Counted from the whole stretch's first letter, positions 23,007 to 37,459 are shown. The stretch: 63,578 bases of DNA, filler included, from Reticulomyxa filosa (GCA_000512085.1; 14 parts of 14 records of this genome joined end to end with filler, not necessarily neighbours in it); one strand, 5' to 3'. Numbers and translations are program-made. Notes: a model not told the origin generated them from the letters alone.

Positions 23007-23024
23007 AAAAAAAAAAAAAAAAAT

Positions 23025-25300
23025 TCTTCACAAATATTCTCTCTTTTACTGCAATAAATTTCAGAATTGATGTCTGCGATATCAATTCTTATCCATTCAC
23101 ATTTGTAAAAACCAATGTTGGGATTGTCTTGCAGAAGTAATCTTTTCTTGTTTTCTTGCTCTTCTTCCTTATTTTCAGATAGATTTGGAACAATCGTCGA
23201 GCCTCTTTGTAAAATTTGAGTCTTTTATTTCTTACTTGATTGCATCCTTTCGTTTTCAATATTGTCATCATCTGGTTTTGATCTTTTCAAACTCTTTTGA
23301 TCAATTGGTTTGATTTCAATAGACTGTTTTCTTTTATTTACATTTTCAATCATTTTTTCATCACTATTAATCGAATGATTGACTGTCCTTGTACTTGGAC
23401 TATGCGACTATATATTATCATTAATTTGGTTTGTCAATGATAACAATGAATCGACAGTCGATTTACCAACCGACTTTGCCTTCCATAAGCCTTTAAACTA
23501 TTATTTTCTTTCGAGTTTGTTTGTATATTTCCTCTTGATTCGCTTGGAAATGATGTTATTGTTTATTAAAGATCTTGATATTCGGTCAGAAAATTTTGCA
23601 AGTGGACTTCACTATTCCATAAAAAAACTTTGCATCGCTTTTTTTGCGTCCTGGCTGATTGTGACTTGATCTCCAAATGATTGGCCTTCCACTGGCCTTA
23701 TATATATTCAAATTACTTAATAACAATAACAAAATTCCAATGATAATTCCAGTGATAATTCCAATAAAATTTCAATTAAAGTCTAATCTAAAATTCTTTC
23801 TAAATAACAAATTTGTAATATCCTTTTGATTTTCCAATGACCCTCTTCAAGGGTTTCAAATAGATATTCAAATTAATTTATCCAAAAAATTTCCAATAAA
23901 ATAACTTTATTTCAGAAAAATTCCTAAGTAAATATCTTTCAAAATCTCAAATACCTATTTTCAAAATTAATTTTTGCTCTAATGTTCGGACCTTGGAATA
24001 AAATCCGTTGATATTATTCTGGAATACCAATAGACTGCTGATCATAGATTTGCTTGCATGTTGGTATTCTCAATGTTAATTTCAATCCCCACCTGCATCA
24101 ACATTGGGTTAAGTGATTGCAATAAGTATTGTGATTGCTGGAATGCTGACTTAATCTCTGCCAATTTACGTCTTAGCGATGATAGTTCATTAGCATCAAA
24201 TTTCTTATTCTGCAGCCTTTGATCTTTGTTATTTTTTCTTTTATTCTTCTTTCTATTGGCTCTTCTTTGGTTTTCGAAGTCCATTATTATCTTTATTTCC
24301 ATTTAATCTTTTTTCTTTGCTTGCTGCACATTTAAAAAATAAATAAATTATTGTCATTCATCATTGGTAACCAAAAGCCAAAAGTATTGAAAGAAACAAC
24401 CAACGCTCTAGTGAAGGGACAAAATGTCCAAAATACATCTCCCATAGTGGCATTGCCAAAATTCAAGATAATTTACCTCGTGAAAAACGTTCAGCAGCAA
24501 TAATTAGTCCTTATGACTTGCAAAGAGCTGCTGTTTTCTTTAGTAAATCTGGAGGCTTTGTGATATCAGCCGGTCTGATAAAAATCTACGTTGATAGTTC
24601 CACAGTTCTACGAAAGAAATATTAAAATGTTTTTGTTTGTTGTTTATGTTCATTTTTTTTCATTGTATTTCTTTGTATTAAACCTTTATTCTACTTTTGC
24701 TATTTGTCTCTTTGGTGTGCATGAATATGCTCAATGTCGTATTTATTGATTACTTGTAAGTCATCGTAATTTTGGTACTGTATTTCGTGTGATTGATGTA
24801 CTTGGTTACGATGTTTTTTTTTCGCTTTTTGGAATTTCAATATTACAACATTCTCCATCATCAAAAAAAAGTAATTGTTTGATGAATACGTACTCCTTCC
24901 TTGTAAATTTAATACCAAGCTTCTATTGCTTTGAGAATCACATAACATTGCAATGAATCACTTGTATGCTGTTTTCGATATAATACACACTTGTGTTTAC
25001 TTAGATTATTTTTGTTTCGTCATTTGCCACTCTTGGTTTGTCAATCTGCAATATTTACATACTTTACTTTTCTTTGTACATTCACTATCAATATGGTTCA
25101 ATCTTTAACATTTCCTGCATTCATATCTATTCACGTCATGATCAGTCACTGCTTCTTCACACTTTTTCTTGTTACTATAATACTTTTCTGGACAAAACAT
25201 AATCGAAGATTATGATGCACGTGTCCAAATTTGAAGGTCAAAACCTCATTTTTCCTTTCTTTTGATTGTGCCATAATGATATTTTTGTATTCCTCCTAAG
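23025..25300 (-). mobile_element. Decayed non-LTR retrotransposon (ORF1 with three CCHC knuckles; possible start of AP-endonuclease ORF)
   Basis: 24945..25119 translates as CRKC*RLNHIDSEC / CKYCRLTN..SGK* / KCVLYRKQHTSDSLQC, the triple zinc knuckle of LINE ORF1. A basic plus coiled-coil tail lies at 24042..24302. A stop-riddled frame at ~23030-23700 ends near IGF/FTNVNG, resembling APE motif I. Confidence 0.65.
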
Positions 25301-25601
25301 CCGTAAAGTGTCCTAAGGCTGGTCTCAATTGTTTTAAATAGAAAATGAAAACATTGCTCACTTTAGAAAAAAAATGAATTATTGATATTAATCTAGAAAT
25401 AATAAATGGACATTAACCTGTTTTAATATTGAAATTATACGTTTTAGATCAGATTTTTTAATGTGTGGGGAAGACCACAAAACTCTAAAAGCGATGACAA
25501 AACATATCCTTTGAGGATTTTTGTTCGCGTCAGAAGGGAGAATAAAGGAAAAAAGAACTCTAACTGCACCAATGAAAAAAAACCAAATATAAAGAATAAA
25601 A

Positions 25602-26870
25602 TTAAGAAAAATTGGGGTCCCAAACCCAGCAATTGGACAACCATTTTTCACCTTCAAGAACAGGCATAGCCTCATGTAAGGTCAAGGTATCGGCGTTCCC
25701 GTCTTCCAACATATTATAAAACATGACGACGGAGCCTTGTCCAGGATGAACCTTCAAGTCAATACGCGGGAAGTGTGTTTCCCCACCGCTGCTGTTTGAA
25801 ACTTGATTATTGAGATATATCAAAAAAGTGAGAAATCGCATTTGTTCGCGATTATTTCTCCAGTCGTGGTGGGGGCGATAGTATTGCTTCAATTGATAGC
25901 GTACAACCTGAAGACTCTCAGCACCAATGGTATCCCAGAGATGAAAATGGTCGATGTTAATGGCGTGAGCAATTCTCCGAAAGATCCAATCAACGGCTTC
26001 GGTGAACGAACGTTTGACCCAAGCTGTGCTCGACGTTCGGGTGAGGTCTTCAAAGGCCTGTGCACCCACTTGAGAGCGTCGCAACAAAGGCTGTGCCAAG
26101 TCGATAATGTGTTGACATTCAAATGGACTCAAAAAATTTTTCAAAAGAAGCACTTTCGGTTTAACCGACAATACCGACCATTCCAAAGTGATAGGTTTTT
26201 TTTCTATCAAGCATTTTTTCAATTCCTTTTTGTTGACAAAGGATTGTGGATAACACTTCAAATGAGTATAGTTAGTTTTCACTTGGAATGTCTGTCCGAT
26301 TTCGGTCACTGGATACATATAAAGGACTGGCTTTGGCCGCGGATAAAAAGATTCCCATTCAATCCCTTTTTGCTCTTTGTAAAATTTTTGAAAGGCTGCT
26401 GCTTCCTTCTTCAATTTCTCTTCTTCCAATTTTCTTTGCTCTTCAGTTTTAAATATCAACTGGTTCACACCATATTTCATTGTTGTCCAGTACAATTTCT
26501 CGTGTGAATGTCCTGGGTGTTGATAGTAGAACTGATGTCCTTGGTACGTGCCGATCTTTATTACCTCATTTGGGCGTAGCACACCTTGCAACACTCCATC
26601 TCGTCCGTTGTCATAATACAGTTCCACCACTTCATCGCTTTCGTTGATAAATTCTACCCAATATTGCTGCGGAGGAGGACCTGGCACTTGCGTGTATTTC
26701 AGTGCTGTTGGTGGCAACTCGTCCGGAACACTGTCTAAGTCTGCCAGCCTACGATCCTCGTTATGCGTCCTCCCGTCACTGTCCACTGACACGGTTTCTA
26801 TTTCTTCCTGTCCTTTGCATAACGCAATCAGTATTAAAAAAATTAAGGCAAGAAGTGAGTAATGTCCCAT
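25602..26870 (-). CDS. Secretory prolyl 4-hydroxylase alpha (2OG-Fe(II) oxygenase) with N-terminal VHL-beta-like domain
   Basis: Signal peptide; LSVKPKVLLLKNFLSPFECQHII, RTSSTAW, ESLQVVRY, YRPHHD (HxD), TFLIYLN, GGETHFP, LHEAMPVLEGEKW (distal His and 2OG Lys). Intronless, 422 aa. Confidence 0.92.
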   Translation of the reverse strand: MGHYSLLALIFLILIALCKGQEEIETVSVDSDGRTHNEDRRLADLDSVPDELPPTALKYTQVPGPPPQQYWVEFINESDEVVELYYDNGRDGVLQGVLRPNEVIKIGTYQGHQFYYQHPGHSHEKLYWTTMKYGVNQLIFKTEEQRKLEEEKLKKEAAAFQKFYKEQKGIEWESFYPRPKPVLYMYPVTEIGQTFQVKTNYTHLKCYPQSFVNKKELKKCLIEKKPITLEWSVLSVKPKVLLLKNFLSPFECQHIIDLAQPLLRRSQVGAQAFEDLTRTSSTAWVKRSFTEAVDWIFRRIAHAINIDHFHLWDTIGAESLQVVRYQLKQYYRPHHDWRNNREQMRFLTFLIYLNNQVSNSSGGETHFPRIDLKVHPGQGSVVMFYNMLEDGNADTLTLHEAMPVLEGEKWLSNCWVWDPNFS

Positions 26871-27425
26871 TACAAATTGACCCTTTCTTTTTTTATTAAA
26901 GTTTTTTTATGGGTTCACTGTCAAAGTTTTTTAAAAGCAAACAAGTGCCACAAAGTAAGGGTCTACTTCACAAAAATTGCTCAAGCAATCTCTAATTTGC
27001 TTTTCCCCTGCCAAAGAAAAGTTACTTTACATATTAAATATGGATAAACCTCAAGGGAAAGCAAGGTTATTGACTTCCATCGCAACATAAACTTATAAAA
27101 CAAGCAAGCCCTGAAAAGTTGGTAGTATGTGTTGATTTTTTTACGCAAGTGGTAAAAAAAAAAGGGGGACAATTATTTTTTGTACGTTGAAAGGGGCAAA
27201 AAAACCTTGCCTGATCGAAATTTAGTAAATTTGTAAAAGATATCTCGTTATTTTACAAGCTCAACAAAGAACAAAAAAAAAAAAAAATTCGTGAAGAAAG
27301 AAAAACAAAACAAAGTGCTAAGACAAAGAACCACCGGACAAGTCTCTCCGTCAATGAATTCAGTGTACCAATATGTATCTTATCTGTCAATATTTCTTTG
27401 TTCGTTTGCTTCTCCTTCTTTGAGT

Positions 27426-28418
27426 CTACTTATCCGTTTCATCGAGAGTGATGGCATTGGCCGGTAGTTTTTGCGAGGTGAGTTGCATGTGCGCCTGCGT
27501 GATACGTACTTTGAAGCGTGTGAGAATGGCTTGATGTAAGGAGTTGCAAAAAAAGAGGTAAAAGAGCTCGGTAAAATTGAGTGAGAGAAACAAACAAGTG
27601 AGATTGACAGCACAATCAAGAGCAATAGCGACGAAAATGAAAAGTTCTAAAGGAAAGTTTGCGATCTTGACCAAAAGACCGATAGCAATGACAACCACGG
27701 TCACGCAAGTGCTCGTGAGTGCAAGCGATGCCAAAATGGTATATCTGGTCATGACTTGAATTAGAGACAGTTGTTGGTTGTTCAGCTCCAAAGTGTTGTC
27801 GGGATTGATCATCATACTATATCTCGAACTCGCTAAGTACAACAGCTTGCCCACAAATAAAGACACCAAATGCACAACACTGCCCATGTACAACAGCGTT
27901 GCTGTGATCGCCAAAGATACAGATGTTGTGCTGGCGTGGTTTGGAGTCACTTTCATTTGCAAGAATGCATATAACACACAATAAATTGGAACCGGCACCA
28001 ACAGGAACAATCGTTGCCGACGCGACAATCGTAGTCGTGGTGAGCCTTGGAACGTATAATGCAGCCTACCTGCCAACAATATGTATACACCAATCAATCC
28101 TAAATAATACATTGGCGTGCCCGTCATTGCCAACCCTACTGTCACTTGCGCTTGCTCGCCTATGCAGAATCCAAATGCAATCGGGGCCATCAACGAATAT
28201 CCGCTCCAACATGTTGCACAAAATATTGTCATCATCCAAAAAAATAACGAAAAGCTCACTCTGCTCGTCCACAGATACTTTAACAACCGTCCGTACATTG
28301 TCGTCACAATTATTGTACCAACACCACATATGCAAGCGCTTACCCATGCCACGGGCTTGGTTGTTGGATCATTACACACCTTTATACCCCAATCCAACAG
28401 CTGAGCATACGTTACCAT
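27426..28418 (-). CDS. Seven-transmembrane GPCR-like orphan protein
   Basis: Intronless 330 aa; seven hydrophobic segments, RL after TM3, D..VN in TM7, and a Cys-containing helix-8-like tail. Confidence 0.7.
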   Translation of the reverse strand: MVTYAQLLDWGIKVCNDPTTKPVAWVSACICGVGTIIVTTMYGRLLKYLWTSRVSFSLFFWMMTIFCATCWSGYSLMAPIAFGFCIGEQAQVTVGLAMTGTPMYYLGLIGVYILLAGRLHYTFQGSPRLRLSRRQRLFLLVPVPIYCVLYAFLQMKVTPNHASTTSVSLAITATLLYMGSVVHLVSLFVGKLLYLASSRYSMMINPDNTLELNNQQLSLIQVMTRYTILASLALTSTCVTVVVIAIGLLVKIANFPLELFIFVAIALDCAVNLTCLFLSLNFTELFYLFFCNSLHQAILTRFKVRITQAHMQLTSQKLPANAITLDETDK

Positions 28419-28669
28419 TGTAAATTGATGCTAGTGTTTTTCAATTGTTGCGTAAAAAAAGGGGCGAAAAAAGCACACGGTACATTTTTTAGTCACAGAG
28501 ACGACCACTTCTTTTTAAATTAAAGTTTTGCGTTTCTATAAGGCACGATTTGATTTTTGCGTGCGAAAATTTAGAAAAATAATTCGACATGCAGTTAAAT
28601 GTAAATGTTATAGAAAATTTTATCTTTCGCTTCACAATTCGGATTTAAAAAACATTGCAGGAAAAAAAG

Positions 28670-31600
28670 TCAAGTCTTTACGTCTGTGTTTGTTGGTGCT
28701 TCATTGTGCGTTTCCGATTGTTTTGTATCCTCTTCGCAGACTAACTCAATGGTCTGCTTATCGAATTCGTCCAGCTTTCTCATGGACATGATGTGCTCTA
28801 CCAAGACCAACTTGTGTTTAACTTGTTTTTTTGTGTTGAATGTAAAATAGTATTATATCACATGCGTGTATGTATAATTTTAGAAAATAGGGATTCCCTT
28901 GTCTAAAAAAAAGTTTTTTTGAGGAATAAACTTGTAGTTTGGGAAGGACTGATGTAAGGATCGGTCTTTTTTTCTTCGTTTGCAGTTTCTTGTGGTAGAG
29001 TTTTATTCTCACTATCAGTGTCTTTTTTTGTGTCGTTACAATCCTCAGATGTATATTGATAGGTTTGGACATGACACGCAGAATCAAGCATGATACTGTC
29101 GTTTTTAATAAAATCAACAACTGCTTTTGCGAAAGGAGATTGCGAAATGGGGGTACGTATTTGATTTTGCCGTTGGTATTGCAGCTTTTCTTGGAGATTG
29201 TTTCCCTTCAATGTCTCTTTCACATTTGCGGACAACGGATCGTGGTTCATCACTTTGTTGCCGTTGGTCGAACCAAAGCCAAACAAATTGCCCATGAAGG
29301 ACACGGTCTGCGTGGGCACGGTCAAGGACGATCCGACAAGAGAGTCGCCTTTCGAATGTGCAGGACAAGGAAGTGAGGCATTTTTTACTGGGGCATATCC
29401 AATTAACATGAAACTTGAAAAAGGTTGGAAACAGCGTTCCACAAAGCGATTCATAATACGCTGTTGAGCAGATGACAATATCAGCGCTTGTTTACCTAAA
29501 GCATCTGGAATTGATTTGCATAAATCAAACAATGAACGATCATGTAATGATATTCTTTCAAATACTCTGTAGTATTTCAAACCAAACATTTCTGATAATT
29601 TAAATTAAATATACATACATACATATATGTGATGTATGCATACGTGTGTGAACTAAGGTTTTCGAAATCCCAAGCCCGTATTAAAAAAAAGTTGAAAGAA
29701 CCTGCAAGCCATGACATTGCGCAAAACAATATTTGCAAAACGAGCCGTGAACAATGTTAGCAAATATCTAAAGACAGGACAAGGCAGCAACTTTTTTGGG
29801 GAAAAAAAGAAATTGTCCAAACGACTGTTGAGAAAGAGGCCCAAGCGCTTCGTGTCTATGTCTTCGTGGATGTTAAAGTATGCTGTGTTTTCAAAACGAC
29901 TTAGTAACAGTCGACAAATGATATCCAATAGTTGTTCTTCGATTTTGCGAATTTTGGAAACACTGTTCAATGCATTGATCCCTGCAAATTCCTCACGTAA
30001 ATGCTATTTTTATTTTGTGAACAATAAAATGATCATTCATTAATATACACATTTATTTATTATTATTATTATTATTATTGTGATTGATACCTTTTTGGAC
30101 TCTGTTTCTAAAGTTTCAATAAGTTGACAGGCACTCCGTAACGTGTTGAAAACAACACAAGTATAAGTGATCAAGTCTTTGATAAATATCGCGTCCAATA
30201 ATTTGGTATTGGCTTCGATTTCATGTAAAATTTTCTCGTCGAAGCAATCCCTCTTGGATGATCTTTCAATCCAGTGACTAATTTCATAGTTGATATACAT
30301 CAATTGCTCTAATTGGGATCCACCTACTTTCTTCACTTCATTTAGCAAATTTCTGCAGTAATCTTCAAGCATAGCCGCGCATCGCTGTTATTTTTTGTTT
30401 GTTTAAAAAAGATGTGTTTTCTCTCATATATTTTTTATTTTTCAACATCTTTGTAAGACAAAAAAAACAATTTTATTACCGTAATCAATTGCGACAAGTA
30501 AATATCATGATTGACAGCAGCGCATTTGTTAACTTTGTCGCTGATGATATGGCCGATGGAAACAATAGTTTGCAAGGACGTCAAAGCGTTACTTTTGGGG
30601 TCTTGCAAATTGAGCAATACGTTTTTTTCTTTTAGCTCCGCAAACGATTCCTGTTGCTGTGCTTTGGTACACTGCACTTTTAACTCACTTAAGCACTGCT
30701 CAATGAAATGATTTAAATTTCTTTCTAACTGCTTTGTGAACATTCCATCCACTTTTTTTTGTATGTGTACGTGTATATATGCATACGTATATGTGATAAA
30801 TGATTTATGCAAAAAAAAAAACAGAAAGAGCCTTGTATAAACAATGCACAATAGCAAAAAAAAAAATAGTAGGGAGAAAAGTGTTAACGTGATGCAACAA
30901 AGAGCTTGTGTGATGAGTCTTGTGGCAAACGCGACATCATTTTGTCAGTGGACAAAGGGTGTATATCCACGACCCGACGCAACTGACAAGGGCCATCCCC
31001 TACTTGTCTCTTTTCGCATGCAGAAATGCGTGTCCAGAGAGTGGAGTCATGGGAACTCTTTTTCACTCCAATGAACACAAACGATTCGTTATCTGACGGC
31101 AGTTGGGATGCGTCAACTTGCAATTGCTTCCATTGTCCGTGATGACTAACCTTTCCAATTGCATAATGCACTGTCATCACAACAAGTGAGGATTCGTTCA
31201 CTGTGCTACGTATTTGTTATTGTTTTAATCATTTATCGTACCATTTTTCATTTATCAACATCATATACATATATACATGTGTGTAATATCCTATAAAAGA
31301 AACCTTAAAAATTTTTCAATTTGTGCGTTGAAATCATTTTTTAAAACATTGACATCAAACGTTTCCGAATGCCAAGTATTGCGATTGTCGATGCCGATGG
31401 CAACCACACTCAGTCCATTGCCGCGTTTGCGATAGTCTTTGTCATCAATTTTGATCCACGAGACGGGGAGTGCTTGGTCTTTATCACACCAACTTCGAAC
31501 GTCCACCTCAATGCTCAAGATGCTTCGTAGCATATCGTCCATCAGTTCCTTTTCAAATTCCGAAAAGAGACGTTGCAATTCTGTCAACACCTCTATGTCC

Positions 31601-34600
31601 ATTGGCTGACTGTCCAACAGATCATTTATTTCATTGATAACTATACATATATCATTATTACATTGTTGTAGCGAACAATAATTTTTGTTTAAAAAAAGTA
31701 ACTTTGTGCAGAAAAGGTAGTTATCAATTGCGTCATAATATCCCAGCGCTTTGGTAAAAAGGGACGAAATTGACGTTGATATTGCTCTTTAATCTTTACA
31801 TATTGCACTCTATATTTCTATGCATTTGTTCAGTTTATTGTTTTAATCAGAGATTATCTTTTGTTATTTGATAAACGTAGTTGTCTCGTTAACTGACAAT
31901 ACTTTGTCCAAATTATTCAAGTGTGCCTGCTTATGACCGATCTGGAGATGATGATTGAAGAAGGGAGAGATAAGAGGTGAGAAGAAAAACAAACAAGCCC
32001 ATTCAAGTAACACAAATTAACAGAGCAAAAAAAAAAAACAGACCAATTGTTGAATGATGTAATTGACAATCTTGTCTTTGCCAGACGGTATTTCTTCCAT
32101 GAGTAAGCAAGCGCGATTCAAACGAACAATGGTGCCATCGCTCATATTGTCTCGGGCATAGCAGACGATATCCTTGAAAATGAGATCTCTTGCCTCTTTC
32201 ATTTTGGCATTGAAATCAGTTTCTGCTTGGGAAAGATCTAACAGAAAGAGGAGCATGTCAAAACATGATTACAGTTATTATTTGTGATCGTTGTAACAAA
32301 TCAAAACTTCGTAATGTTTGCACAACATCCCGTTTGGTAAGTAGGATTTGCAAACCCAAACGCAGATCCTCCAATCTTTCATACCAAGCAATGGCCTTGC
32401 GCACACTGTTGTCCGTTTCAAAGTCGCTAAACTCTTTTTTTCCTTCGGACAAGAGTCGTTCCAAATGTCGGATGTTTCGCAACGTTAAATACCAAACTTG
32501 CTCTATCTTTTGAATTGTCTCAATCCCGTCCCAACTCACATCCGCCATCGACTTTTCGTCAATCGGCATGCTCTTCATTGACAACAACGAGTTGGAATTG
32601 CAAACAGAAGAATTGCTGTCGCTGTCAATGGGTAGTGGAACAGAGGCAGACTTATGGTCTTTTTTCTCATTGCCATTGCTATTGTTATTGTTATTGTTAT
32701 TGTTACCGTTGTTATTGCTAGTACTATAGCTATTGCCATTGCCATTGCCATTACCATTGCTATTACCATTGCTATTATCATTGCTAGTACCATTGCTATT
32801 ACCATTGCCATTGTCATTACCAGTGCTATTGTCAATCAAATCTCCCGATGACTTTTCGTCTTTCAAAGTGTCATTGCTCACTTCGAAAAGATTGAATTGA
32901 AACACGTGTTTGATCTTTTGCACCCATTCATCGCATTCTTTCGTATCTTTGCAATCCAAATGATACATTTGATGCGGAAATGACAAATCAAAACTGCGTG
33001 CCCCTCTTCGCGCTTTTTCCGACCGTCCAAGTTTGCGCACCGATTGCAGCAAACCTACTTCAATCGTCCCTACACGCATAAATACAAATACTTTTTGGTG
33101 AAAACTTTTTAACAACAAAGACAATACTTGAATGATCAACTTTTCAATTTGGTGCCATTGAAATACTCCAAATTTCGATTTCCAGTTAATACAAAAAACG
33201 CCTTTTGAACGCGCGACATGGTAGACTTTCTTATTTTGAAGTAAAGCCATATTTCATGGCACGATACAACGATTCCGCCTGGGATATGTGTGAAGCGGAC
33301 AAGGAGGGCAGGATTTCGTCCAAATTGCCGTGCATTTGATCTCCAATGCACATCATTGGAGTGGTCAACTCCGCGCCAAGACGAGACTGACAATACACAC
33401 TCACTGCAGGCGCCCAAGGCAGACACGCTTCACTGTTCCACACTTGTTCATTACTTCGTGTTCGAACACATTGTTTGCCTTGCAAATCTGTTCACATATT
33501 AGTTAACGTTTGTTATATTTATACAAATATATACATATATATATGTATATAACAATCTCTTAACTATTGAAAATGTAACACACCTACATACTCTTCGGTG
33601 ACCTGCATCGGACTGAGCTTGCTACTTGATTGCTCGCACAGCTTCAAAATTCGATTGGTATATTCTCTTCGCACGCACACGTACCGAGGAACGTCCAAAG
33701 GCGATAAAATATGCTCCCGCGCGGCTGAATTCGCGTAGCCATCAATTGGTAGTGCAATGTCGCCCAATGCAACGTAGTCTTGTGGTGGCATTGCCCTCCA
33801 AAAGCTTCCCAGCGGCACATCCTCGGCTGTGTGGATATATGCATGTGACAACAGTAAACACACAAAACACTTCACTTTTGAATGGAATTAACATTTGTTA
33901 AATTTGGATTTTTGTGGCATGTTCTTTGGGTCTCGTGCGCTCCAAATGCATTTGAATCCAAGTGGGGCTTTGAAAGCTTCCGGATCATTTCCACCCGTTT
34001 TGACGATAATCAATTTGCCCATATTTGGCACGGTAAGTGGATGTTGCCAGTCATTCACCGCGATATGTCCAACCATGTACTCATTTGGGAACAACACGGG
34101 CTCCCACACCGACAACTTTTTCGTCGCGTTTTCCATTAGCGATTCTGATGTCCACACGCATCGAAAGATCGATGTATACGATATTACCAATGGAGAGTCC
34201 GCGATCACAGGGACGTGGCCTTCTCGAAACGAATTTGCTTGTATCCTTTTTTTTTAAAAAAATTCTTTAACTTTATAAGTGCCTCTTGTTTAGAGAAGGA
34301 AAAATTTGGAGTTTAAAACAAACAAAAGGAGTAATAGATATATCGTCACGGATAATTACATGTGTTGTGATTTCCAACGGGGAACAGTAAAAGCAGGACG
34401 TTGATTGGCATGTTTTTGTTCTGGAACAGTTAGACACATGAATGGCATCGGAACAGGGGTGTACACTCCGTAAATGTACTGCTCTGCCAATTGCACAAGA
34501 TGGAAATGACTTTTCTCGTGATGGAGGATCTCTCGAATCACTCGGCCATCTTCCACGTATTCATTGCGCACACATCCCAAGTACTCCATGTGATATTTAT

Positions 34601-36823
34601 CCTTCAAATGTCCTACACTCCATTTCAGTACATTACAAAAAAAAAAAAAAAAAAAGAGTTGTTCATGGCAACAGTGTAACAGATTTAATAAAATATATAT
34701 CTTTTATTTGTCAATTTTTTTTTGTTTTCTCCCTCCTTCTTAACTCTGTTCAAAGTAGGTCAAGATACGATCAGGAATGAATTCTGCAGGTATCTCTTCC
34801 TCTTCTTCAACACACACCGATCCCAATGCAGTATAGCCAGGTGGAGGTTTCAATATCATCCAATATCGATGTGCTTTTGTTTCTTCGACTCGTTCATGTC
34901 GAACAATTTGTAGTCTTTTGTTTTTTTTCGCAATCTCTTTTATTTAAAAAATAAATAAATAAATAAATAAATTCGGACAAACAAAAGTATAAAAAACAAC
35001 TGTTGGGGCGGTTTGATGGCTTCTTTGTCTCGACAATTGGAAGCAAAGAGAAAAGGAATGTTGTTATTGGGATTGATTGCTCTGGTCAACAACAAATGTC
35101 CAAAAAAGAAGATATTGGGCTTTTCCTTGACAAGCGCCTGCGGACGCAGAGGAATGCTGTTTTCGATCCACACTTTTTGCGCGAGAATCGGACTATCTCG
35201 AACGGGCGATTTCACGGACGATTGCGTGGGGACTTGAATATGTTGCGCAATATACTTGGACACATCTGGACACCAAACGGAGAGTTTGTTGTGATGGTAT
35301 CGCACAATTGGCTCTGACATCATCGTCTCGATATCGCACAAACTCAATCGAGACGACGTTATGTCAAAACTGGGCAGCGCCGATGTGCTTATGTGTTCGA
35401 ACGACCAACCGATTCCCACTTTCACGACGGGATATGGAATTGACAGCTGTGCTATGCCCCAATTGCAAAAAAAAAAAAGAAGAGATATCAAATAATGAAT
35501 CCATATGATATAAAAAAAAAAGGTCTTTTAAAATGAATTCGATTAGTAAGCTGTTCGTTTGACTTCATCGGTCAATGGAGACGTGAATCGATTTGTACGC
35601 GAATTGGACTTGTTCGTACTTGGCTCTTCGGCTTCGCTCTCGGACCAGCCGTCGGCCAAGTCCAAAGAATGTCTTCCATTGTATGGTTGCATGGGCAATG
35701 GTTGAACCAATGTGATTTTACCATTTTTATTTGTTTGCACAGTTAGTTTTTTCTTGTCATTATTGTTATCATCACTGTCGTTGTCACTATCATCCTCGTT
35801 GTTGCTGTCATTGCTATGATTCGCATCGTCGTTGCTCGGCTCATTTGTGCCTGCTTGCTTTTTCTCATCGCTCCCGTTATTTGTCGACATTTTCAACTTC
35901 TTCACTATTTCTGACTCTTCTCCCAACACTCGTACGCGCTTCCATTTGCGTCGTCGCACGTTGTGATTCAATTTTCTGCTATTGCAAGTCTGCGGAGATG
36001 TAAATTCTATTTTTTCCCATTTATTTTTATGTTTTATTATTTCTTTCTCTTTTAAAAAAAAAAAAAACAAACCGTAGCCATATTGCCAGCCTTTTTTGTC
36101 TGTACGCTCATCTACATGCACTTTCCAATCATCTTTCCATTCCCACGTTACTGCCAATGCCGCTTCTGCGTCTTTTTTTGTCCTTTGCATATTTGTACAT
36201 ACCATAGGCGCATATGCATATGCATATGCATATGCATATGCCATATGCATATATCATATGCATTGTACTCAATTGCACGCAAAAGACAACTCTTCTTTAC
36301 ATAAAATATACACAAATAAAGAATTACCAACGCCTTGCGTTTGTATCGCACCAATGAGGTGGGTCTCCGGGCTTGTAAGGGGAAGTCCATCTTCCGCCCA
36401 TTTTGCGCTCGTTTTCGACTAATATTGTAACAATATTGGTCACTCCTCTCTCTACTCGACACACACGAGGTCTTCGATGAATCTTTTGTCGGACCAAATA
36501 ACAGTGCTTGTGCTCATGACTCCATCCAACCTCGGGCTGCCACGCGTTTCCAAATGATTTGGAATATCTCCATTCGCTCGCACTCCACTCATCCACCCAA
36601 ACCCATCGATCCTTCCCATTGTCTCTATTTATCGTTGGCAAACCGATATTTTTCGGTTCATCACATGCCTCATAGATCGTATTGGTGAAGTGGTCTGGGT
36701 CGATGTTTGATCGAGGACACGGCCCCCAACCTTTCTGTTTCCAATTTTGTTTTCATGTTTGGGAACTTTTTTTTTCTTAATATATATGCTTTGTGCCTTT
36801 ACATACCAACAACCAGCGCTCAT
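28670..36823 (-). CDS. Very large multi-exon protein: 2x DysF, Vps62/DUF946-like repeats, PH domain, Sec6/CATCHR-like helical C-terminus
   Basis: DysF: ENERKMGGRW..DPPHWCD..WEWKDDW..GWQY..VRRRKWKRVR. Vps62-like: LSVWEP..GHIA, GSFWRAMPPQDYVALGDIA. PH: FFVL..LEYF..GTIEV..SFDL..YHLDCKDTKECDEWVQKI. Last exon VEHIMSMRKLD with stop at 28670-28672. All exons are collinear on one fragment; the single-gene model is inferred. Confidence 0.7.
36211..36240. repeat. (CATATG)5 palindromic hexamer microsatellite, intronic
   Basis: Five exact copies, with degenerate copies flanking. Confidence 0.9.
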
Positions 36824-37459
36824 TTTCCAAAACTATTTCCCAACAAAGTTCCATCCAGCAAACAATGAATGATTCGTCAAATTTTAATAAGGGATAGCAC
36901 GAAGTTTTTATTCATTTGTAGTTCGTCATTTTGTCTTATATTTTTTTTTTTAAGCTGCTCAAACAGCACTTTTTTTGGTATTACATTCGTCCTTAAAAAC
37001 AATTCTTTTAAAATTAATAATTTTATTTCAGTCACATATCTATCAATATTAGAAATATAAAATCATAATGTGGAGAAGCACATAAAAAAGTTTAAAACTA
37101 ATTCAACTTCATGTGGAGCAATCATGAATAATGAAGTTAAATCTTTTCCTGTTTTTTTAAAGAAAAAAAGAAATTAAATTAGTATAAATTGAAAAAATAT
37201 CGATAACGTGATACAACTATCACACCAAAGTGAAAATAATTTTTAATGAAATAAATTATATTTGAAACATTGAAGGCAAAAAGTCTATTAAAAGAAAATA
37301 TTTCTGAACAAATTTCATCTTATTGTTCCTGTTTTTATTTTTGTTAGTATTGCAAACAAAAATAAAAAGGCATTTGTTAAAGAAAATGACATTTAACGTT
37401 TCCAAGAGCTACAGCATGTTGCAAAGAAAACTGAACGCCTAAAACGATATCTTATGATG

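Follow-up and report, generated by a model that had tools for sequence, protein, structure and literature searches.

Does a stretch of about 8 kb in the genome of the amoeboid foraminiferan Reticulomyxa filosa encode six small hypothetical proteins, as the public record has it, or one large protein built like a membrane tether? The locus lies in a window of 63,578 nucleotides (nt), in which records of assembly GCA_000512085.1 are joined end to end with filler and to which all positions below refer; its part from 23007 to 37459 is the reverse complement of contig ASPP01023434.1 (14,453 bp). An initial annotation of this DNA, made from the sequence alone, had proposed a single gene on the minus strand. 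The answer reached here, to which we assign a probability of roughly 0.55, is that a single protein, cytosolic and about 2,040 residues long, is encoded here. In it, two DysF domains would be followed by an acidic linker, Vps62-like repeats, a PH domain, an Asn-rich linker and a Sec6-like rod. The rod is interrupted by a domain with the ILEI/FAM3 (lectin-type) fold and ends in a conserved C-terminal helix.

In the public record, six GenBank models cover the locus, all on the same strand and all entered as hypothetical proteins:

36190-35543, minus strand: model of 215 residues
35323-33888, minus strand: model of 368 residues
33250-30884, minus strand: model of 643 residues (ETO10501.1, here P0002)
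30743-30435, minus strand: model of 102 residues
30372-29653, minus strand: model of 224 residues
29589-28903, minus strand: model of 228 residues (P0001)

This split is untenable, because the models cut through the PH, ILEI and CATCHR domains. When the minus strand is read in three frames, with paralogues as guides, a multi-exon coding region is obtained that extends from an ATG at 36854 to a TGA at 28672-28670. It has 21 exons, separated by 20 GT-AG introns that are 62-179 nt long and have a GC content of 0.15-0.37; its splice phases all agree, and its exons join into a frame of 2,037 codons that is broken only once. All splice junctions were placed from sequence and homology. The model of a dynamic-programming gene finder was rejected in favour of manual, homology-guided junctions, since it missed the real exons E2 and E6 and took wrong donors, and a reading of 31788-31702 in frame f1 was replaced by the annotated f2 exon 31809-31703, which matches the paralogues P0003 and P0004. 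Exons 1 and 2 are absent from the GenBank annotation; the coding score of exon 1 is +0.40 bits per codon, and upstream of it the score is -0.2 to -0.8. The queries of the database searches were single exons or database proteins; the joined spliced model was used only in scripts, for frame continuity, residue counts and the slicing and comparison of exons, and never as a query in searching or folding. In the order of the protein, the features of the model are:

36807-36854, minus strand: exon 1, with the ATG and the first motif of the probable domain DysF#1, MELCWEIVLENERWLL, followed by the donor GTATGT (direct reading)
36444-36734, minus strand: remainder of the W/R-rich DysF#1, at the start of exon 2; motifs DPDHF, WVWVDEW, W-RY and VRQKIHRRPRV
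35920-36443, minus strand: DysF#2, in three exons (36443-36328, 36182-36073 and 36006-35920), with the motifs ILVENER...DPPHW, WEWKDDW...GWQYGY and VRRRKWKRVRV
35564-35919, minus strand: acidic Asn/Asp/Ser-rich linker after DysF#2; the unspliced frame ends at a TAA at 35547-35545
35447-35563, minus strand: inferred intron of 117 nt and phase 0, GTCAAACG...CACAG, which would join the DysF part to the Vps62-like part (from composition and phase)
33268-35446, minus strand: Vps62/DUF946-like beta-repeat region, exons 4-9 (35446-35001, 34914-34769, 34612-34360, 34245-33893, 33826-33592 and from 33453 on)
33234-33237, minus strand: frame break, a one-base shift in the A4 run TTCAAAATAAG within strand 1 of the PH domain (from alignment with an open reading frame, ORF, of the paralogous locus L003)
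32893-33262, minus strand: PH domain, at the end of exon 9 and the start of exon 10, split by a 71-nt intron (33140-33070), with its C-helix Trp in DEWVQKI
32540-32892, minus strand: Asn/Gly/Ser-rich low-complexity linker, in the exon shared by the C-half of the PH domain and the start of the rod (stop-free stretch 33253-32261)
31513-32539, minus strand: helical N-terminal section of the CATCHR rod, exons 10-14 (up to 32308, 32237-32044, 31926-31898, 31809-31703 and from 31640 on)
30968-31512, minus strand: predicted ILEI/FAM3 (GG-type) alpha/beta domain inside the rod, with a 98-nt intron at 31303-31206 (from AlphaFold2 and Foldseek)
29389-30751, minus strand: Sec6-like helical bundles of the CATCHR rod, exons 16-19 (30751-30480, 30384-30091, 30003-29702 and from 29566 on)
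28932-29388, minus strand: low-complexity tail of exon 19, with the conserved block FAKAVVDFIKNDSIMLDSACHVQTYQ (29133-29056)
28670-28821, minus strand: terminal exon, with the conserved helix KHKLVLVEHIMSMRKLDEFDKQTIELVCEE (28819-28730) and the TGA at 28672-28670 (tblastn and splice phases)

The C-terminal half of this protein has relatives in the same genome. An exhaustive protein search with the exon 31701-31294 returned only the R. filosa paralogues P0003, P0004, P0006 and P0007 together with two tiny environmental fragments. By sequence comparison, the rod with its ILEI domain is shown to form a paralogue family, with at least five loci in R. filosa and a fragment in a marine metagenome. 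P0007 (RFI_06289, 1,085 residues) is encoded by a stand-alone rod and ILEI gene at L001 (ASPP01005288.1), and L003 (ASPP01049092.1) is collinear with the window from exon 8 through the last exon. The marine fragment (L006, TARA_SAMEA6044303 scaffold_836345, 574 bp) encodes, at 122-493, 123 residues that are 27% identical to the exon holding a helix and the start of the ILEI domain; the family therefore extends beyond the freshwater Reticulomyxa. At L001, an unrelated ORF at 903-2891 with a RanBP2 zinc finger and an RBR/IBR-like part ends 63 nt before RFI_06289.

Consider the rod itself. Its N-terminal part is collinear with P0007 and L003, and P0002 matches the Pfam family Vps53_N with E=3.5e-4. 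In the AlphaFold2 (AF2) model of P0002:225-622, the mean predicted local distance difference test score (pLDDT) of which is 68, residues 8-241 are all-helical and form eight helices, after which comes an alpha/beta domain. The exons of the C-terminal bundles are collinear with P0007 in tblastn and are covered by the alignment A2. When P0007 is compared with Pfam Sec6 (PF06046), it scores 26.3 bits (E=3.3e-6; gathering threshold, GA, 29.7) over profile positions 313-445. The window's own exons, scanned singly against Pfam, match no DysF, Sec6 or ILEI family, and the CATCHR paralogue profile A2 found no Sec6 among PDB sequences; PDB sequence searches with exon 2, with the exon at the front of the ILEI domain, with the C-terminal exon and with P0007 gave no meaningful matches.

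The fold of the C-terminal bundles was predicted with P0007:555-775, a segment of the paralogue, as the query, and with the window exons included in the clean sub-alignment A2. The AF2 model is all-helical (pLDDT 67; predicted template-modelling score, pTM, 0.69). Foldseek gave no significant match to it, but yeast Sec6 (2FJI) had by far the highest template-modelling (TM) score, 0.50, with a probability of 0.99. VIA-align placed the MUN domain of Munc13-4 at the top, with Z 9.8 and 191 aligned residues, and further matches were Tip20 (8.2), Sec8 (7.8), Munc13-1 (7.7), Exo70 (7.6) and Sec6 (7.5). Those VIA-align matches that cover at least 175 residues and reach the C-terminus of the model are all CATCHR proteins (Munc13-4, Tip20, Sec8, Munc13-1 and Sec6), while two Exo70 structures align over 153-155 residues. 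The Z-scores of the CATCHR set, 7.4-9.8 overall, are ordinary for helical models, and the argument for CATCHR therefore rests on the consistency of the hits. When the atlas is searched by features, the nearest clusters listed are all Sec6, RINT1, COG4, Vps53, COG7, COG2 or exocyst component 4, and when it is searched by shape, clusters of Vps54 and DIL are obtained with TM scores of 0.61-0.64. On the strength of these models, the C-terminal part of the rod is shown to have a predicted CATCHR fold.

The end of the protein is conserved in the family as well. The block FAKAVVDFIKNDSIMLDSACHVQTYQ (the FAKAVVDF block) is kept in P0007, L003 and L004, and the terminal exon matches L001 (E=3e-7) and L003 (E=4e-6) in tblastn, while P0007 matches the equivalent exon in L004. 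A word search with the C-terminal exon returned the window's own ORF or nothing.

A domain of quite another kind is inserted in the rod. In the model of P0002:225-622, which is a product of the window itself, it occupies residues 244-392 at a pLDDT of about 64-83, and the top 21 Foldseek matches of this domain in the PDB are all FAM3A/B/C, the POMGNT1 stem or TMEM2, at E=1.5e-6 to 1e-3, FAM3B (2YOQ) being the best with E=1.5e-6. The TM score normalized by target is 0.56-0.74 for stand-alone domains and, by reason of length, lower for full-length TMEM2 and POMGNT1. In Pfam, ILEI (PF15711) matches P0002 over profile positions 1-88 of 90 with E=0.0048 and 17.8 bits, and it matches the paralogue P0006 with 31.7 bits, above the GA of 27. 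An ILEI/FAM3 fold within the rod is thus shown at the level of predicted structure.

From these results follows what became of the earlier view of the C-terminal half. The Sec6/CATCHR call, which the initial annotation rated as its weakest part and tied to how the C-terminus would model, has been strengthened more than any other, by the Pfam Sec6 match of the paralogue, by the feature clusters, which are CATCHR, and by the AF2 matches over the full length of the model, which are CATCHR only. The terminal peptides that it read are present and are kept in three paralogues. The splice that it implied directly after 'DSIML' had to be given up, in that the exon continues to about 28932 and the paralogues keep the following LDSACHVQTYQ. 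Its long helical region is found as a helical rod on either side of 31512-30968, but there it is broken by the alpha/beta domain of ILEI fold, an insertion that the initial annotation had missed, as it had the frame break in the PH domain.

Upstream of the rod, a PH domain is supported by profile comparison, by a conserved Trp in its C-terminal helix and by name: the region matches Pfam PH_2 with E=0.0028 (18.4 bits, under the GA of 22.2), the N-half in L003 matches Pfam PH (PF00169) over positions 2-35 with E=0.19, and ETO10501.1 carries the UniProt name PH domain-containing protein. In the beta-repeat region that precedes it, the motif (F/Y/V)W..(P)..P..Y..(L/V)G occurs in three clear copies, in E5 (about 34865-34812), in E7 and in E8 (about 33803-33753). 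The repeats of E5 and E8 are similar with z=4.8 over shuffles, and E8 is 51% identical to the paralogous L003 69-257. Exon 7 matches Pfam Vps62 (PF06101) with E=0.0045 and 15.9 bits (GA 22.1) over profile positions 28-118 of 541, and a faint precomputed Vps62 match is found on the GenBank model of 368 residues. The other repeat exons and the paralogue have no match to Pfam Vps62, and exon 7 has no meaningful match among PDB sequences. As judged from these scores, the region weakly resembles the N-terminal repeat part of the Vps62 family and stays below membership.

The N-terminal part is rich in Trp, which makes up 7.4% of 215 DysF residues, and both of its domains are split by introns. With the C-half of DysF#2 as phmmer query, four of the six PDB matches at E<=10 are DysF domains: the inner DysF of myoferlin (2K2O) is best with E=0.0059, followed by full-length myoferlin (9H6X, 0.058), TECPR1 (8P5P, 0.25) and dysferlin (4CAH, 4.7). 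Removal of a 66-nt in-frame intron gives this domain a DysF-like spacing, and the sole PDB match of a two-sequence DysF profile is the DysF of dysferlin (E=0.42). Sequence comparison thus shows DysF#2 to be a DysF domain. DysF#1, which consists of exon 1 and the first 97 residues of exon 2, is probably one as well, as suggested by the same five short motifs in the same order. Pfam and PDB sequence searches with it gave no match, and in exon-by-exon comparison its similarity to DysF#2 is no greater than that of shuffles (z from -0.1 to 3.0). PF06398 (Pex24p/TECPR1-like DysF) was unmatched by every DysF exon even at E<=10, the exons having been scanned singly with the domain unspliced. With DysF exon 2 the atlas search by features gave no usable match, word searches with this exon and with exon 4 returned the window's own ORF or nothing, and metagenome scans with it and with the exon-8 alignment gave no match.

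How far, then, do these parts form one gene? For the Vps62-like, PH and rod parts this is shown by comparison with the paralogue, because ORFs of L003 run across both junctions: a single uninterrupted ORF leads from SFWRAIPPKGYVALGD, in the Vps62-like repeat, into the N-half of the PH domain, and another leads from the C-half of the PH domain into AIRWYEDL, where the rod starts. In the window, the exon 33069-32308 holds the C-half of the PH domain, the linker and the first helices of the rod, AIAWYERLEDLRLGLQILL, which are homologous to the N-terminus of P0007. That splicing of the 117-nt intron joins the DysF exons to the remaining ones is a conclusion of moderate confidence, based on composition and phase. 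The 117-nt gap has a GC content of 0.28 and an intron-like coding score (-0.03 to -0.66 bits per codon), and the 41 codons between it and the first ATG at 35323 are open, contain no in-frame ATG and have an exon-like score (+0.52 bits per codon). Elsewhere in the gene, two introns that the annotation supports also have GTC donors.

Much of what the initial annotation had claimed for the whole locus is retained. Its coding region, 28670-36823 on the minus strand, agrees with the model from the ATG at 36854 to the TGA at 28670, its order of DysF-DysF, Vps62-like, PH and CATCHR is borne out along the minus strand, and its PH domain at about 33260-32890 is supported by the PH_2 match, the match of the paralogue's N-half to Pfam PH and the UniProt name. 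Other claims are kept in part: the Vps62-like repeats recur in three copies of the motif, but their Vps62 match is below the cut-off and confined to 28-118 of 541; DysF#2 is borne out by DysF matches in the PDB, but DysF#1 has no Pfam or PDB match and only shuffle-level similarity; and the single gene holds for the joined Vps62-like, PH and rod parts (by the ORFs of L003 and the exon in the window), but the DysF part may be separate, with its in-frame stop at 35545.

A number of observations weigh against a single protein. No RNA run is listed from which transcripts could be read, and the GenBank record has separate genes at the locus. The frame of the DysF part has a stop of its own at 35545, and the donor six codons ahead of this stop, GTCAAA, departs from the consensus; word searches and metagenome scans found no DysF upstream of the paralogues or in metagenome loci; and since R. 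filosa genes can sit 63 nt apart, adjacency proves little. The module of rod and ILEI can do without the N-terminal parts, as RFI_06289 stands alone. The likeness to Vps62 is weak, the Sec6 match is below the Pfam cut-off and comes from a paralogue that shares no more than 25-30% identity with the window, and the sequence that was folded for the CATCHR comparison is also that of a paralogue. As assembled, finally, the PH domain is frame-broken, so that this copy could be a pseudogene. From the break at the acidic linker, where the GenBank model of 215 residues ends at the TAA, a possible though doubtful alternative is obtained with two neighbouring genes, both on the minus strand: one for a DysF-DysF protein of about 340 residues (36854-35545), and one for a protein of about 1,660 residues that starts at the ATG at 35323 and contains the Vps62-like part, the PH domain and the CATCHR rod with ILEI. 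The stop at 35545 and an ATG-ATG at 35323, both in frame, fit this alternative, as do the break between the GenBank models at the border of the DysF and Vps62-like parts, intergenic spacers in R. filosa of down to 63 nt and the fact that DysF was not found next to any paralogue; yet the 41 open codons upstream of the ATG at 35323, exon-like but without an in-frame ATG, would then have to stay untranslated, and the 117 nt before them are intron-like and bounded by a phase-compatible GT...AG. That GenBank is right and that six independent small genes (215, 368, 643, 102, 224 and 228 residues) are present is highly improbable. It is the record of ASPP01023434.1 as deposited, but its models split single domains and take in intron sequence and incorrect frames, as ETO10501.1 does in beginning in the wrong frame over the N-half of the PH domain; they distribute over four models a CATCHR rod that is found in one model of 1,085 residues in RFI_06289, and two of the borders that they propose are crossed by continuous ORFs in L003.

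The frame break in the PH domain can be located with the help of L003, the uninterrupted ORF of which aligns with frame f2 of the window up to 33234 (score 115, about 22 standard deviations above shuffles) and, from 33249 onward, with frame f1 (score 51, about 6 standard deviations above shuffles). From this switch of frames follows that one base is missing in the TTCAAAATAAG run at 33237-33234. A 38-nt intron at 33267-33230 that would bridge the two frames was tried and rejected, because L003 aligns without gaps to MKYGFTSK in f2 and to RKSTMSRVQKAFFVL in f1. At L004 (ASPP01006310.1), around 2008-2023, a frame shift occurs in an A-run where the ORFs overlap and leave no room for an intron, which is an indel of the same homopolymer kind. 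Since this other contig of the same assembly shifts alike in an A-run, an assembly error is likelier than a pseudogene mutation. It is unlikely that the locus is a decaying paralogue of the rod and ILEI family, with a genuine break in the PH domain and no full-length product. The break does fall in a conserved strand of the PH domain, at least five family copies make redundancy plausible, and no RNA runs are listed for the stretch, but the 2,037 codons contain no more than this one break, the other exons are open and coding-like with their motifs kept, and the break sits in a homopolymer, where the similar shift in L004 points to the assembly.

If the single protein of about 2,040 residues is accepted, it can be compared with known systems, of which the closest are Sec6/EXOC3 and M-Sec (TNFAIP2). 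The likeness lies in the C-terminal rod of CATCHR fold, for which Sec6 is the best Pfam match (in the paralogue); as known here from sequence and model, it comes with a Pfam score under the gathering threshold. In M-Sec, an N-terminal region that binds PI(4,5)P2 precedes a Sec6-like C-terminus, and the protein drives the formation of nanotubes (PMC5024327); a lipid-binding N-terminal part ahead of a Sec6-like C-terminus is what it has in common with the R. filosa protein. M-Sec and EXOC3L are also alike in being a lineage-specific expansion, as is the R. filosa family, and lineage-specific domain gains and duplications, as well as PH-bearing members, are described among CATCHR proteins (PMC8290106). 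The R. filosa protein is about 2.5 times larger than Sec6 or M-Sec, and its DysF, beta-repeat, PH and inserted ILEI parts are unknown in Sec6 proteins. With Exo84, Sec3 and CAPS/Munc13 it shares a lipid-binding domain, PH (or C2), directly upstream of a CATCHR/MUN rod (PMC8290106), but it has no C1 or C2, and those families are not known to have the ILEI insertion or DysF; Pfam scans of the window exons and PDB searches with the paralogue profile gave no match at sequence level to these families. TECPR1 combines two DysF domains and a PH domain in one cytosolic protein, and its DysF (8P5P) is among the PDB matches. The R. filosa protein differs from it in having no tectonin beta-propeller repeats and no ATG5-binding region, in carrying its DysF tandem at the N-terminus and in having as effector a tethering rod rather than an E3-like adaptor.

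The remaining likenesses concern single parts. With Vps62/DUF946 (yeast Vps62/Tda6, plant DUF946 and the insertion in plant VPS13), the repeated W..P..P.GY..LG and a weak match to the N-terminal part of the profile are shared, but the score falls short of the cut-off, and for the remaining, C-terminal three-quarters of the profile no match is detected at the R. filosa locus. The inserted domain has its fold in common with FAM3/ILEI/PANDER, the POMGNT1 stem and the GG domain of TMEM2/CEMIP at a sequence identity of only 11-17%, and it differs from these in being embedded among domains that are otherwise cytosolic in type. To our knowledge, all solved members of the ILEI fold are secreted, lumenal or extracellular; some ILEI-fold proteins bind carbohydrate. 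No paper that reports DysF and Vps62 together in a protein, or that deals with an exocyst of Reticulomyxa, was found in the literature search. The combination of domains is new within the class of CATCHR tethers, and it was not found described in the literature.

By analogy with these systems, the protein may be a membrane tether. It would then recognize its target membrane by the lipids there, through the DysF and PH domains and possibly the beta-repeats; like Sec6, M-Sec and Munc13, the CATCHR rod would catch vesicles or SNAREs, and the ILEI domain might add a further ligand, possibly a glycan. A more specific version, which is speculative and has little probability in our view, would make it a sensor of damage. 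In this version two signs of membrane rupture would be read together, lumenal or outer-leaflet lipid that has become exposed by the DysF tandem, and exposed glycans by the cytosolic ILEI/GG domain, after which the rod would recruit vesicles for patch repair or for reticulopodial fusion; the rod and ILEI family would be a foraminiferan invention that maintains a naked, tearing and re-fusing network of pseudopodia. Its lipid part follows TECPR1, the DysF of which binds sphingomyelin exposed on damaged membranes (PMC10476172), and its glycan part follows the logic of galectins.

Exocytosis and the building of membrane protrusions depend centrally on CATCHR tethers, among them Sec6, M-Sec, Munc13 and CAPS, and DysF domains were shown only recently to sense damaged membranes. 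If the architecture is correct, the placing of DysF and PH sensors on a Sec6-like rod would offer a natural experiment on the targeting of tethers to particular membranes, and an ILEI domain in the rod, and hence facing the cytosol, would have no known precedent for this fold beyond the secretory and extracellular space. The reticulopodia of foraminifera fuse, split and reseal continuously, and lineage-expanded, modified tethers are a concrete candidate for the molecular basis of this behaviour. The locus also illustrates how the public annotation of R. filosa fragments long multi-domain genes, with six models made from one or two genes and one DysF domain left unannotated; from this follows that such architectures are invisible in protein databases.

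Some minor observations concern the DNA in and around the gene. The 145-nt intron between E2 and E3a contains a (GCATAT)n microsatellite at about 36205-36250 of the window, on the minus strand. The stretch 23007-25600 is AT-rich (GC content 0.29-0.32), holds short ORFs only and has no gene in the public record. About 250 nt past the stop of the large gene begins an annotated hypothetical protein of 290 residues (27380-28418, minus strand); a Pfam scan of the ORF of 330 residues at this position matched no family. Further downstream on the same strand, at 25602-26870, lies a separate gene with an ORF of 422 residues, at the C-terminus of which the Pfam family 2OG-FeII_Oxy_3 is found with E=3e-15.

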